NCBI GenBank assembly: GCA_002269645.1 | Contig: NIVC01000010.1 | Span: forward strand, 2,108,001 to 2,172,000 | Direction: 5' to 3' | DNA length: 64,000 nucleotides | Source: Macrostomum lignano | Lineage: Eukaryota | Part shown: positions 1,363 through 50,779 of the stretch, one piece after another | How the letters are laid out: the number at the start of each line of letters is the position of its first letter | Numbering within the stretch: position 1 is the first letter of the stretch | Translations under genes and position numbers: made by a program | Notes under the pieces: generated by a model | Seen by the model: the letters and a program-made list of their open reading frames with translations, nothing else | Databases searched by the model: none | What the model was told of the DNA's origin: nothing

Positions 1363-4300
1363 ATGAGCAGAAGCCAGGTTCGACCATCTGAGAGCGGCTC
1401 CAACCAGCTGCGGACCGTCCAGCTGCCTCTGCAGCTTCATAATCTTGAGAAGATTACCAGTCAGCTCAAGCTTCAAAATCCACTGGCTTCGACGAGTGCC
1501 GCCAATCTGAACTCAAATGTGGTCATCGATGTTCAGCAGCAGGTTGCCAACCTGTACCCGTGGGAGATGACCAAACACGTGAGCCATTGGTTTGATTGGG
1601 GATTCAGGAACACTAAAATGGGATCTCTCTGAGTTGCCAAAAAGGCATCTCAAAAAACGCTAGCTAAAATTAGTTTTTAAAGGTGCCAAATGCTTGCGAA
1701 ACGCGTGCAGAGAAGCGGGCGCAGAACAGAGGCCACCATTCATTTAGGGTTCATAGAGAGAGCCAGGGCCGCTGAACACCCTGTGCGAGCGTGTGCCAGC
1801 GCTCAGGATTCAGCAGAACGGACGTGACTGTTTGATTTTCATCCAGCGTCTGAAGGCCCCTGCAAACTGACTAATCTGCAGTCACACCGTTGGATTTCAA
1901 ACCCTCTCTGAACTCAAAGCCGCCCCTCTCGCCCCCGCAGTTTCACCACGCGGTTCGCGAAGGCGACGCGCAGTTCGTCCGGGCGGCCGTCCTCGCCAAG
2001 CCGTCGCTGATCGACAGCTTGGACGAGCGGCTCACGTGCGCCCTGAGCTACGCCATCAAGTACCGCCGTCTGGAGGTTCTGCAGCTGCTCATTCGGAAAG
2101 GCGCTACGCTGAACCTTCGCGGCCAAGAGGGCACCCGGCCGATCCACGCGGCTGCAACCTTCAACGTCGAGGAGGCGATGCAGCTGCTGCTGCGGCAGAA
2201 GGGCATCAAAATTGACGTTACTGACGACAAGGGGCAGACGGCCCTGCATGTGGCGTGCCGGAGGAGCCACGTGCAGATCGCCAGGGTGAGGGGTTGCTGA
2301 TGACCTGCAGCCCTGAAACCCTTAGCCCTGACACAACTCAGCTCCTGACACAACTCAGCTCCTGACACAACTCAGCTCCTGACACAACTCAGCTCCTGAC
2401 ACAACTCAGCTCCTGACACAACTCAGCTCCTGACACAACTCAGCTCCTGACACAACTCAGCTCCTGACACCCTCAGCCCTGACACAACTCAGCTCCTGAC
2501 ACAACTCAGCTCCCGACACCCTCAGCCCTGACACAACTCAGCTCCGGACACCCCCAGCCCTGACACACCTCAGCCCTGACACCCTTCAGCCCTGACACCC
2601 TTCAGCCCTGACACACCTCAGCCCTGACACACCTCAGCCCTGACACCCTCAGCACTGACACACCCCAGCCATGACACCCTTAGGCCCTTCAGCCCTGACA
2701 CCCTCAGCCCTGACACACCTCAGCCCTGACACACCTCAGCCCTGATACCCTTCAGCCCTGACACCCTTAGGCCCTGATACCCTTCAGCCCTGACACCCTC
2801 AGCCCTGACACCCTTAGGCCCTGATACCCTTCAGCACTGACACACCTCAGCCATGACACCCTCAGCCCTGACACCCCCAGCCCTGACACCCCCAGCCATG
2901 ACACCCTCAGCCCTGACACCCTCAGCCCCGACACCCTCAGCCCTGACACCCCAGAGTGGGCCCTGCAAACAATCTGAATGGCACAAACAAAACACGCCCT
3001 GACCGCAGCTGCTGCTTGAATCCGGCGCCGATGTGCTCAAACAGGAGAATGACGGCGTGTCTGCACTGCACCAGCCATCTCGGAATGGCAGCTCGGAGCT
3101 GTGCGAACTTCTGGTGCGCGTCGAATTTTAAATTACTACTCGTATGCTATTAGTAAAACTATTAAGTGTCTGCTTCTAAGTAATAATTTCATTTCTCATA
3201 GTTGTCAAGCGGCGCTAACGTAGACACGGCCGATAACAACGGCCTGACTCCCGTCATGGTGGCCTCCATAGAGGGTCGCCTGCCAATACTGAAACGGCTT
3301 CTTCAGCATTCTACTGAGAAGAGTGAGCTCTCTAGTAGTATGTTATTTTGAGCAGTGTAAATAGCTCACTGGCTGTATTGAACCAACAGCAACTTGCGAT
3401 TTTCAGATGAAAAGGCCCGGGGCAGCCAAGCCGGAAAAATGCTGCTGTTGGAACTGCGGGATAATGACGGATCGACAGCACTGCATCATGCGACTCAGAA
3501 TCGCCAGGTTGAGGCGAGTGAAGATGGAGGCAGCTGGGAGGAATTGCTTGGGCACTGGATACGGAGTCTTTGAAGAGAAGAATGACTTCTTGTCACGAGA
3601 GAAGAGAGTAGAGAATGTGAGAGAAGAGAGCAGGAGAGAAGAGAGCGAGAGAGAAGAGAGTGAGAAAGGAGAGAGCGGGAAAAGAGAGAGCGGGAGAGGA
3701 GAGCCCGGAACTAACTTTAGAATGATGATGAGAATAATTCATTTCTTATTTGCAGATTATTGCCCATTTGCTGGAAGCCGGAGCGAATTCCAATGCCAAA
3801 AGGGTTTGTTTATTTCAAGTGCAACACTAACTAAAGAGTGCAGACTCCACCGTCTGCAGCGTTCGCTAATTGCTGAAAAAAAAATCAATTAAATAATTAA
3901 ACCAGAATGACGGCAACACGCCGCTGCACATAGCCGCATCGCTGGGCTACCAAGACGTGGTCGAGATTCTCCTGTCGAATGGCGCAAATCCGTGCGCTTT
4001 GGACAAGAAGAAGCGAACGCCGCTGCATGAGTGAGCGCGATTTGTGATATTTTTGCTGTTTTGTGACGTATTTGATGCCTGTTTTGTGACGTCTCTGATG
4101 CCTGTTTTGTGACGCTTCTGATGCCTTTTTATGATTCTTCTGATTTCTGTTTTGTGACGTCTCTGATGTCTGTATTATGACGTCTCTGATGTCTGTATTA
4201 TGACGTCTCTGATGCTTTTTTGTGATGTCTCTGATGCCTGTTTTGTGACGTCTCTGATGCCTGTATTATGACGTCTCTGATGACTGTTTTGTGACGTCTC

Positions 4301-49862: not shown

Positions 49863-50779
49863 ACTTGTTTAAAAATATCTTACATGTTTAGTCATCTCCC
49901 ACGGGTACAAGTCGGCAATCAACGTTTGCACTTCAGTGGCAACGTTCGGATTGTTGGCTGCGAGACTAGTTCCTCCAAGCGACGTCTTGGACAAACCAAA
50001 CAAAGCTGGCGATGGCTGAACAATGTCCAGCTGATGCTGCATGTCATAGTCTGACGGACGGACACGACTACTGAAGCCACTGGACGATTTTCTTGTCATT
50101 TCGAGCTCAATGTCAATCTGTTTATTGACAGAAGCTAGTAGAAAATTGAAGCAAGTATAAATTAACAAAATTAATGTTCTCAAAATACTTATTTTTATAC
50201 TTTACTTTCAACGTACTGTTGCGGCAGTATAGAGCCAATCAGACTGCTGATTGGCTCTATACTGTGAGGTTTAACGTCAAACTAAAGTTCTTAGAATATT
50301 TTAGAGTCCAAAATATCCCAAATGTACAAAAAAAGTCTGCATACATTGTAGTCCATGTCCGGTTTGGTACACACACAGACACATTGTTGCCATTGGTAAC
50401 AGAAATAAAACAAGCTGAACACAATTCTCAAGCTGCATGCAAGTCTAGACTTTTGCAGAGCATGGTAGCCAGGCGATTCATAAGTTGGCTAGGTTATCCA
50501 CAAGCATACTGTATTGTTGTGTGTGTATGTGTGCATAAGCACTCAAGTTGATTAGCTATTCCTTAAGTTAACACATGAAATTGATTTTTTGCTAAAAGAA
50601 ACCTGAGCTAACACAATACTTTTAGACAGATGCAGGGTTGTAATTGTGTTTTTCGTAAAGTATTGCATGCGCCACAACTCAGTGTTTATTTTTTTAAACT
50701 GCATGGTGCTTTGAAACAAGCTGTAGGTTAATATTTCTTCAAAAAATCATTTTATACGAGGTAAATGTTAACTGTTTGA

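Follow-up and report, generated by a model that had tools for sequence, protein, structure and literature searches.

Human Y-chromosome palindromes P1-P8 have arms which are more than 99.9% identical over their full length, and arm-to-arm conversion takes place between them. On a smaller scale, the human paralogues RHD and RHCE lie with their 3' ends facing across a spacer of ~30 kb that holds TMEM50A, and patchy conversion between the two is frequent (PMC4824203). Interlocus conversion has also been described in Caenorhabditis for adjacent inverted paralogues, namely the hsp16-48 modules and hsp70-7/-8; the review of that work finds both orientations permissive, and proposes that intron divergence is a barrier to conversion (PMC3966223). 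The present study concerns two TRPA1-like channel genes, A and B, in a 64,000-nt window of the Macrostomum lignano genome (GCA_002269645.1, contig NIVC01000010.1, positions 2,108,001 to 2,172,000, forward strand; all coordinates below are those of the window). Their pattern of identity is very probably the result of interlocus gene conversion that has recurred, in short tracts, between old paralogues lying inverted beside each other.

By this comparison RHD/RHCE is the closest analogue, with the Caenorhabditis pairs also close. As at the RH locus, the genes are tail-to-tail inverted paralogues, the spacer holds an unrelated gene (here an open reading frame with a fibrinogen domain), and short tracts make exon-scale mosaics in which other exons remain distinct. 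The RH genes, however, are young and about 92-96% identical throughout, including their introns, whereas here the background is saturated and the introns unalignable, and the tracts are far sharper, being confined to islands of homology. The Caenorhabditis pairs are likewise old duplicates with diverged flanks and homogenised coding segments, and their tracts sometimes take in introns; there, whole small genes are homogenised, whereas a 24-exon gene of 20 kb carries about nine tracts of at least three ages here. The Y palindromes are similar in having inverted repeats around a unique spacer and, probably, in their intrachromatid non-reciprocal exchange, but differ in that the identical stretches are only 0.2-1.2 kb long at the TRPA1-like locus.

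Alignment of the left half of the window to the right half with blastn gave a collinear, tail-to-tail inverted duplication in which only patches align. Arm A ends at 22933 and arm B begins at 31018, and the start codons lie exactly at 1363 and 50099. About 6.4 kb of the 21.5 kb of arm A (~30%) chains to arm B, most introns being unalignable. The homology stops approximately 15 bp beyond the stop codons, and neither the flanks nor the two gene ends (exon 1, untranslated regions and upstream sequence) can be aligned between the copies. An earlier annotation made from the DNA letters alone (hereafter the sequence-only reading) had described this as palindrome-arm conversion. That term does not suit arms of which so little aligns and whose homology ends so close to the stop codons: the whole-length identity that defines a Y-type palindrome is absent, and interlocus conversion is the better description.

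The 24-exon models of both copies (Table 1) were obtained with a splice-junction solver, guided by conservation between A and B and by the M. lignano protein models P0001 (A-type; UniProt A0A1I8HFV5) and P0003 (BOX15_Mlig032910g2), which are the closest protein relatives of the translated pieces. The two proteins are 87% identical in amino acids over 1103 aligned codons. Synonymous divergence (dS) was calculated for each exon by the Nei-Gojobori method on the A/B codon alignment, and is sharply bimodal. It is low in exons 2 (0.035), 9 (0.14), 10 (0.15), 11 (0.085), 12 (0.14) and 15 (0.16), and again towards the 3' end in exons 19 (0.07), 23 (0.02) and 24 (0.14); these exons, with values from 0.02 to 0.16, together make up 53% of the coding sequence. 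Exons 7 (0.30), 21 (0.40), 3 (0.50) and 13 (0.72) are intermediate, and in exons 1, 4, 5, 6, 8, 14, 16, 17, 18, 20 and 22 dS is above 1 or saturated. The change can occur within a single exon: approximately the initial 21 codons and the final 10 of exon 21 are near-identical, and its middle is diverged. A GENECONV-style test is inapplicable to two sequences and was replaced by permutation tests of heterogeneity and run length. The heterogeneity statistic (chi-square-like) was 196.7, a value reached in 0/5000 codon permutations, for which the mean was 18 and the maximum 39.9; the run-length statistic, which measures the clustering of identical runs, was above all 5000. The alternation of identity along the gene reported in the sequence-only reading is thus real, dS being far from uniform across exons, and the per-exon counts given there were all reproduced: 114/115 identical amino acids in exon 2, 23/40 in exon 4, 9/16 in exon 6, 50/50 with 5 synonymous changes in exon 15, and 78/80 in exon 23.

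The limits of the converted tracts were determined with blastn and with anchored extensions from every exon edge (Table 1). Near-identity extends into introns in six of the eight tracts, as had been claimed of most of them, the exceptions being those of exons 9 and 15, whose ends are no more than ~3-13 bp away from the edges of the exon. Within tracts, identity is 84-98% in intron 11, 88-100% in intron 23 and 90-98% in the 80 bp of intron 1. Around exon 19 the tract takes in ~280 bp on the upstream side and 480 bp on the downstream side, with 98-100% identity in the first 160 bp of intron 19, and the tract of exons 11-12 runs 200 bp further downstream. Homogenised non-coding sequence is thereby found in introns 1 (3' end), 2, 11, 12, 18, 19 and 23, and the exon 21 tract reaches upstream of its exon. 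The remaining introns are 35-55% identical, ie at the level of unrelated, unalignable sequence, and differ several-fold in length.

Table 1. Genes, converted tracts and other features of the TRPA1-like locus, in window coordinates; partner coordinates are those of the matching segment in arm B.
Feature	Position	Strand	Partner in arm B	Details
Gene A, TRPA1-like channel, intact, 24 exons, 1122 aa	1363..22918	+		exons 1363-1578, 1941-2285, 3009-3113, 3202-3322, 3407-3513, 3756-3803, 3906-4030, 5101-5149, 5307-5588, 5963-6213, 8935-9046, 9119-9288, 10498-10582, 10684-10743, 10991-11139, 13177-13324, 16955-16999, 17080-17181, 17948-18114, 18662-18791, 20549-20722, 20821-20889, 21721-21959, 22849-22918
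Gene B, inverted paralogue, 24 exons	31033..50099	-		exons 50099-49884, 47332-46988, 46292-46188, 46098-45978, 45892-45792, 45697-45650, 43954-43830, 43746-43698, 41631-41350, 39465-39215, 38812-38701, 38628-38459, 38169-38085, 37962-37903, 37818-37670, 36419-36272, 35845-35801, 35703-35602, 35067 (or 35051)-34912, 34296-34167, 33573-33400, 33285-33217, 32498-32260, 31102-31033
Tract 1: final ~80 bp of intron 1, exon 2, shared 16-bp array of intron 2	1860..2949	+	47407-46445	core 1862-2321, 98% identical
Exon 9 tract	5294..5593	+	41644-41345	96.3% identical; limits 13 bp upstream and ~5 bp downstream of the exon
Exon 10 and start of intron 10	5958..6384	+	39470-39037	exon 94.8% identical, intron part 60-80%
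Exons 11-12, intron 11, start of shared 31-bp array	8850..9506	+	38897-38245	93.8% identical; 8850-9312, 96%
Exon 15 tract	10979..11144	+	37830-37665	95.2% identical, essentially exon-bounded
Exon 19, upstream (ATGAG)n array, ~480 bp of intron 19	17680..18592	+	35327-34438	core ~17908-18274, ~99% identical; youngest datable
(ATTG)n array of intron 20 and 5' part of exon 21	20302..20640	+	33812-33482	
Exon 23, all of intron 23 with shared 32-bp array, exon 24	21707..22933	+	32512-31018	~93% identical overall
Unique spacer, 8084 bp	22934..31017	.		holds fibrinogen-C-domain open reading frame (24827-25399, -) and 12-bp array (27813-28466)
Start of exon 19 of B, 11-bp deletion relative to A	35051..35067	-		A reads CGCCTGTCCTA[CTTCATGAGCA]TCGAGGTG; CTTCATGAGCA, 11 bp, is missing in B

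A third sequence is provided by two loci of the M. lignano Mlig_3_7 assembly, L001 and L002, here called A' and A''. They are 99% identical to each other and collinear with gene A, to which they are 85-94% identical in introns and ~97.7% in exons. Both end short of B', their partner locus, and A'' is without exons 23-24, its tail being satellite in intron 22. In the unconverted exons B holds nearly all the changes (A/B/A'': 0/26/0 in exon 18, 2/41/1 in exon 4). For exons 2, 11, 15 and 19 the pattern is star-like, with branches of equal length (5/6/7 changes in 762 sites), and in exons 9, 10 and 12 the B branch is moderately longer; the conversions of these last three are the older ones (dS ~0.15). 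In the core formed by exon 19 and intron 19, ~11 intronic sites separate A from its near relative A'', and at these A is identical to the distant B. At ~13 sites of the core A and B are alike and A'' is different, against one private change in A and one in B; the exon 19 conversion is therefore younger than the split between A and A''. The tracts therefore lie in layers of different age, and from these counts at least three layers are distinguished: one at dS ~0.15, one around the A/A'' split, and at least one that is younger (exon 19). Exon 23, with its dS of 0.02, is probably a second younger event. Both copies are under purifying selection. In the low-dS exons the changes unique to B are 21 synonymous and 4 nonsynonymous, a ratio indicating that the copies have been constrained since conversion.

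An ancient inverted, tail-to-tail duplication would have produced the two channel genes, in which silent sites of unconverted exons are now saturated and introns can no longer be aligned. On several separate occasions, non-reciprocal homologous repair between the copies would have overwritten segments of between ~170 bp and 1.2 kb. With the copies inverted and 8 kb apart, this was probably intrachromatid. Heteroduplex may form only where the copies are still alike, and for that reason tracts would begin within conserved exons and break off where introns are diverged or filled with arrays, their extent being limited by leftover islands of homology, ie conserved exons and previously converted introns. 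The exons which stay apart are the ones for the N-terminal tail, for ankyrin repeats 4-6, for S1-S2 and its loop and for S5, along with the TRP-helix exon; these may be too diverged to pair, or selection may keep them distinct. In both copies the GC content at third codon positions (GC3) is 0.79 for the exons of low dS, compared with 0.60-0.63 for those of high dS. This is consistent with GC-biased repair, through which repeated conversion may have raised GC3 in the affected exons, although it is a correlation only, in which the changes are not polarised. Taken with the bimodal dS, the near-identical introns and the three or more tract ages, it bears out the proposal of the sequence-only reading that an old duplicate pair has been converted repeatedly in short tracts while other exons diverged.

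The possibility that the near-identical patches are false, one paralogue's reads having corrected the other during assembly or polishing, has to be considered at a locus which is 47% tandem arrays, in a genome reported to be redundant and to contain duplicates that are hard to assemble (PMC5730564). The 11-bp deletion in exon 19 of B could itself be such an error, since an intact B-type model (P0126) exists. Nevertheless we regard an artefact as most improbable. The tracts are not identical, each having 2-13 mostly synonymous differences, and they are 300-1200 bp long inside 20-kb arms with unalignable introns, where long reads would be placed unambiguously. The separately assembled A' and A'' are as close to B as A is in the same exons, and far from it elsewhere, and P0126, which comes from another assembly, has an exon 19 identical to that of A followed by exons 20-21 of B type, as in the window. 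The same mosaic in these independent sequences argues against a local assembly chimera. It is hardly credible that no conversion took place at all and that every exon is equally old, some being held by extreme synonymous constraint or a locally low mutation rate. The low-dS exons are indeed also the most conserved in protein, and are rich in GC3, but their near-identity continues into the adjoining introns, and the intron 19 core is not frozen, as the differences between A and A'' described above demonstrate. Within this one gene, moreover, dS varies 50-fold, which is far beyond known synonymous constraint. The history could also be reversed, in that a young pair (dS ~0.1) imported its divergent blocks from distant TRPA-like paralogues, by conversion or segmental replacement. 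There are several TRPA-like genes in flatworm genomes, and the evidence here is from one window. This is very unlikely, however: it would require ~10 separate imports, each with whole introns of differing length and their arrays; the divergent blocks are present in the same form in A' and A''; and the unalignable flanks and gene ends fit an old duplication.

Repeated conversion between old paralogues is thus the preferred explanation, and four considerations weigh against it. The almost exact coincidence of the exon 9 and exon 15 tracts with exon edges is unusual for DNA-templated conversion. The comparison consists of A, B and A'/A'', whereas the classical proof is made with four-taxon trees for each exon, which take in B' or an outgroup species. 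The tracts are known from assembled sequence rather than from reads. Finally, the causality behind GC3 could partly run backwards, GC-rich conserved exons being better substrates for conversion. The exon-edge ends are explicable by loss of intron homology; exon 9, for example, has no flanking homology because introns 8 and 9 of B consist almost wholly of copy-specific arrays. They would also be accounted for if the tracts of exons 9-10 and 15 had been copied from spliced RNA or cDNA. The exon 9 tract ends ~5 bp past its donor and the exon 10 tract begins ~5 bp before its acceptor, with an unalignable intron 9 between them, and dS is similar (0.14-0.16) in exons 9, 10, 12 and 15. Such a template is scarcely conceivable, however, given that the copies agree in the 12-13 intron bases just before exon 9, that exons 13-14 are unconverted although they lie between converted exons, and that intron 11 was co-converted; the arrays in introns 8 and 9 of B are by themselves sufficient to explain the lost homology. 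Taken together as alternatives, interlocus repair templated on a spliced transcript or cDNA from the other gene of the pair, in an animal germ line (exons 9, 10 and 15; dS ~0.15), and the seeding of conversions by intronic minisatellites with a GGCGCC core that would promote recombination are highly improbable.

The share of tandem arrays is 47% in gene A and 48% in gene B, a load in line with the repeat content of the whole M. lignano genome, of which 15% is simple and tandem repeats (PMC5730564). Copy-specific arrays make homologous introns differ up to 25-fold in length; intron 8, for example, is 157 bp in A and 2066 bp in B, and intron 7 is 1070 bp in A and 83 bp in B. Arrays common to both copies are present in homologous introns 2, 10, 12, 18, 20 and 23, as the sequence-only reading had listed. 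Its suggestion that minisatellites initiate or terminate conversion did not survive a count of tract ends, which are not enriched near arrays: 10/18 lie within 30 bp of one, compared with 76% expected, and 12/18 within 80 bp, compared with 82%, the expectation being the proportion of all positions that are this close to an array in either copy. The shared arrays are better read as parts of the converted tracts than as initiators.

Some features of the arrays may be recorded separately. The hexamer GGCGCC occurs 156 times in the window, against 7.9 expected, and nearly all occurrences are the core of eight different 15-24-bp minisatellites (16428-16874, 18939-20033, 21051-21633, 32591-33104, 35960-36162, 41705-43251, 44314-44851 and 48828-49864). 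All eight are intronic in A or B, and GGCGCC is found in 0/7 arrays outside the genes. The sequence CTCATTTTRGCGCC is common to array units of non-homologous introns (intron 20 of A and intron 6 of B) and points to either a family of dispersed arrays or an origin driven by the motif. In intron 10, the 60-bp array consists of tandem copies of the boundary between intron 10 and exon 11 (6893-7696, 8850-8934; 39058-38813). Each of its units comprises 20 codons, is open in the exon 11 frame and ends in a copy of the exon 11 acceptor (...CCCCAG/AGA), so that use of the upstream acceptors would insert in-frame units of 20 amino acids (KDSITQQLYKISDSFAPNDPR) between ankyrin repeats. Intron 22 of A'' contains more than 4 kb of a satellite whose period is 272 bp (22520-26630 of L002); this satellite is absent from gene A of the window.

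The products of both genes have the layout of TRPA1 channels. The ankyrin region contains ~16 repeats (Pfam Ank_2, E 3e-126 in 10 stretches, plus Ank, Ank_4 and Ank_5), and the Pfam Ion_trans score is 24.6 bits, slightly below the 25-bit cut-off. Collinear matches were obtained to the structures of Drosophila TRPA1 (7YKR, E 7e-93, query 276-1052) and human TRPA1 (6V9V, E 6e-84, query 274-1054). As in TRPA1 channels, there is a long array of ankyrin repeats at the N terminus and a pore helix alongside six transmembrane segments, together with a TRP-like helix and, at the C terminus, a short exon for a coiled coil, although the C-terminal tail of human TRPA1 is longer than that of A or B. These matches justify the label 'TRPA1-like', in the sense of similarity rather than of orthology within the TRPA clades.

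The coding sequence of gene A is 3369 nt long, with 22 GT-AG introns and one GC-AG intron, and the M. lignano model P0124 matches it at 100% over 155 residues. The GC-AG intron is intron 5 (donor GCGAGT, 3514-3519), which has the same type of donor in the Mlig_3_7 copy; gene B has GT at this position (GTGATA). All splice sites of gene B are canonical and it contains no stop codons. Exon 24 encodes the short coiled-coil tail RVAELEASVKDLTAKLDAFMRHA, ending in the stop codon, by way of the exon 23 donor CAG/GTGAGA and the acceptor ttgcaatttcag. A version of exon 24 in the frame GKQAHQ... was dropped in favour of this one, the donor being perfect.

The sequence-only reading spoke of two complete 24-exon genes. 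This is correct for A; for B, the 11-bp deletion at the start of exon 19 (Table 1) needs a caveat. With the homologous acceptor (35067) the frame of B is lost after ...KRLSY, through the whole S3-S6 region. Only splicing to an AG 16 nt further downstream, which makes the exon start at 35051, keeps it open, in a product of 1111 amino acids without RLSYFMSIE. RLSYFMSIE belongs to the S2-S3 linker, and its motif YFM.I aligns with KRNYFMDI of human TRPA1. Because B is otherwise clean, has the 21:4 ratio of synonymous to nonsynonymous changes given above, and has an intact exon 19 in P0126, the deletion would be recent, or peculiar to this copy, or an assembly error, and does not mark B as an old pseudogene. 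The B-like UniProt model P0002 was considered as a source of an unconverted B' exon 19 and was dropped, as it has frame-shifted stretches.

Elsewhere in the window, the open reading frame in the spacer is a partial fibrinogen C-terminal domain (Pfam E 9e-16), from an unrelated gene or gene fragment. An exon-sized open reading frame at 63050-63517 (-) contains most of an eIF4E domain (Pfam IF4E, E 1e-49). A further one of 533 amino acids, at 55997-57598 (-), has zero Pfam matches, and its C-terminal part is a coding 48-bp tandem repeat (16 amino acids, TDQSSSTETSALRSGG; array 56079-56581).

The conversion described here is an ordinary event of an already known kind; the locus provides a clear, textbook-style mosaic with datable layers and leaves the concept unchanged. 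It does have practical consequences, in that dS or gene trees calculated for this pair as whole genes would mislead, and the mapping of short reads is ambiguous within the tracts. For the organism, the result is two TRPA1-type channels in which about half of the coding sequence evolves in concert while ankyrin repeats 4-6, the S1-S2 loop and the S5 region are kept different. The divergent blocks are candidate regions for functional divergence in the sensory biology of this flatworm.

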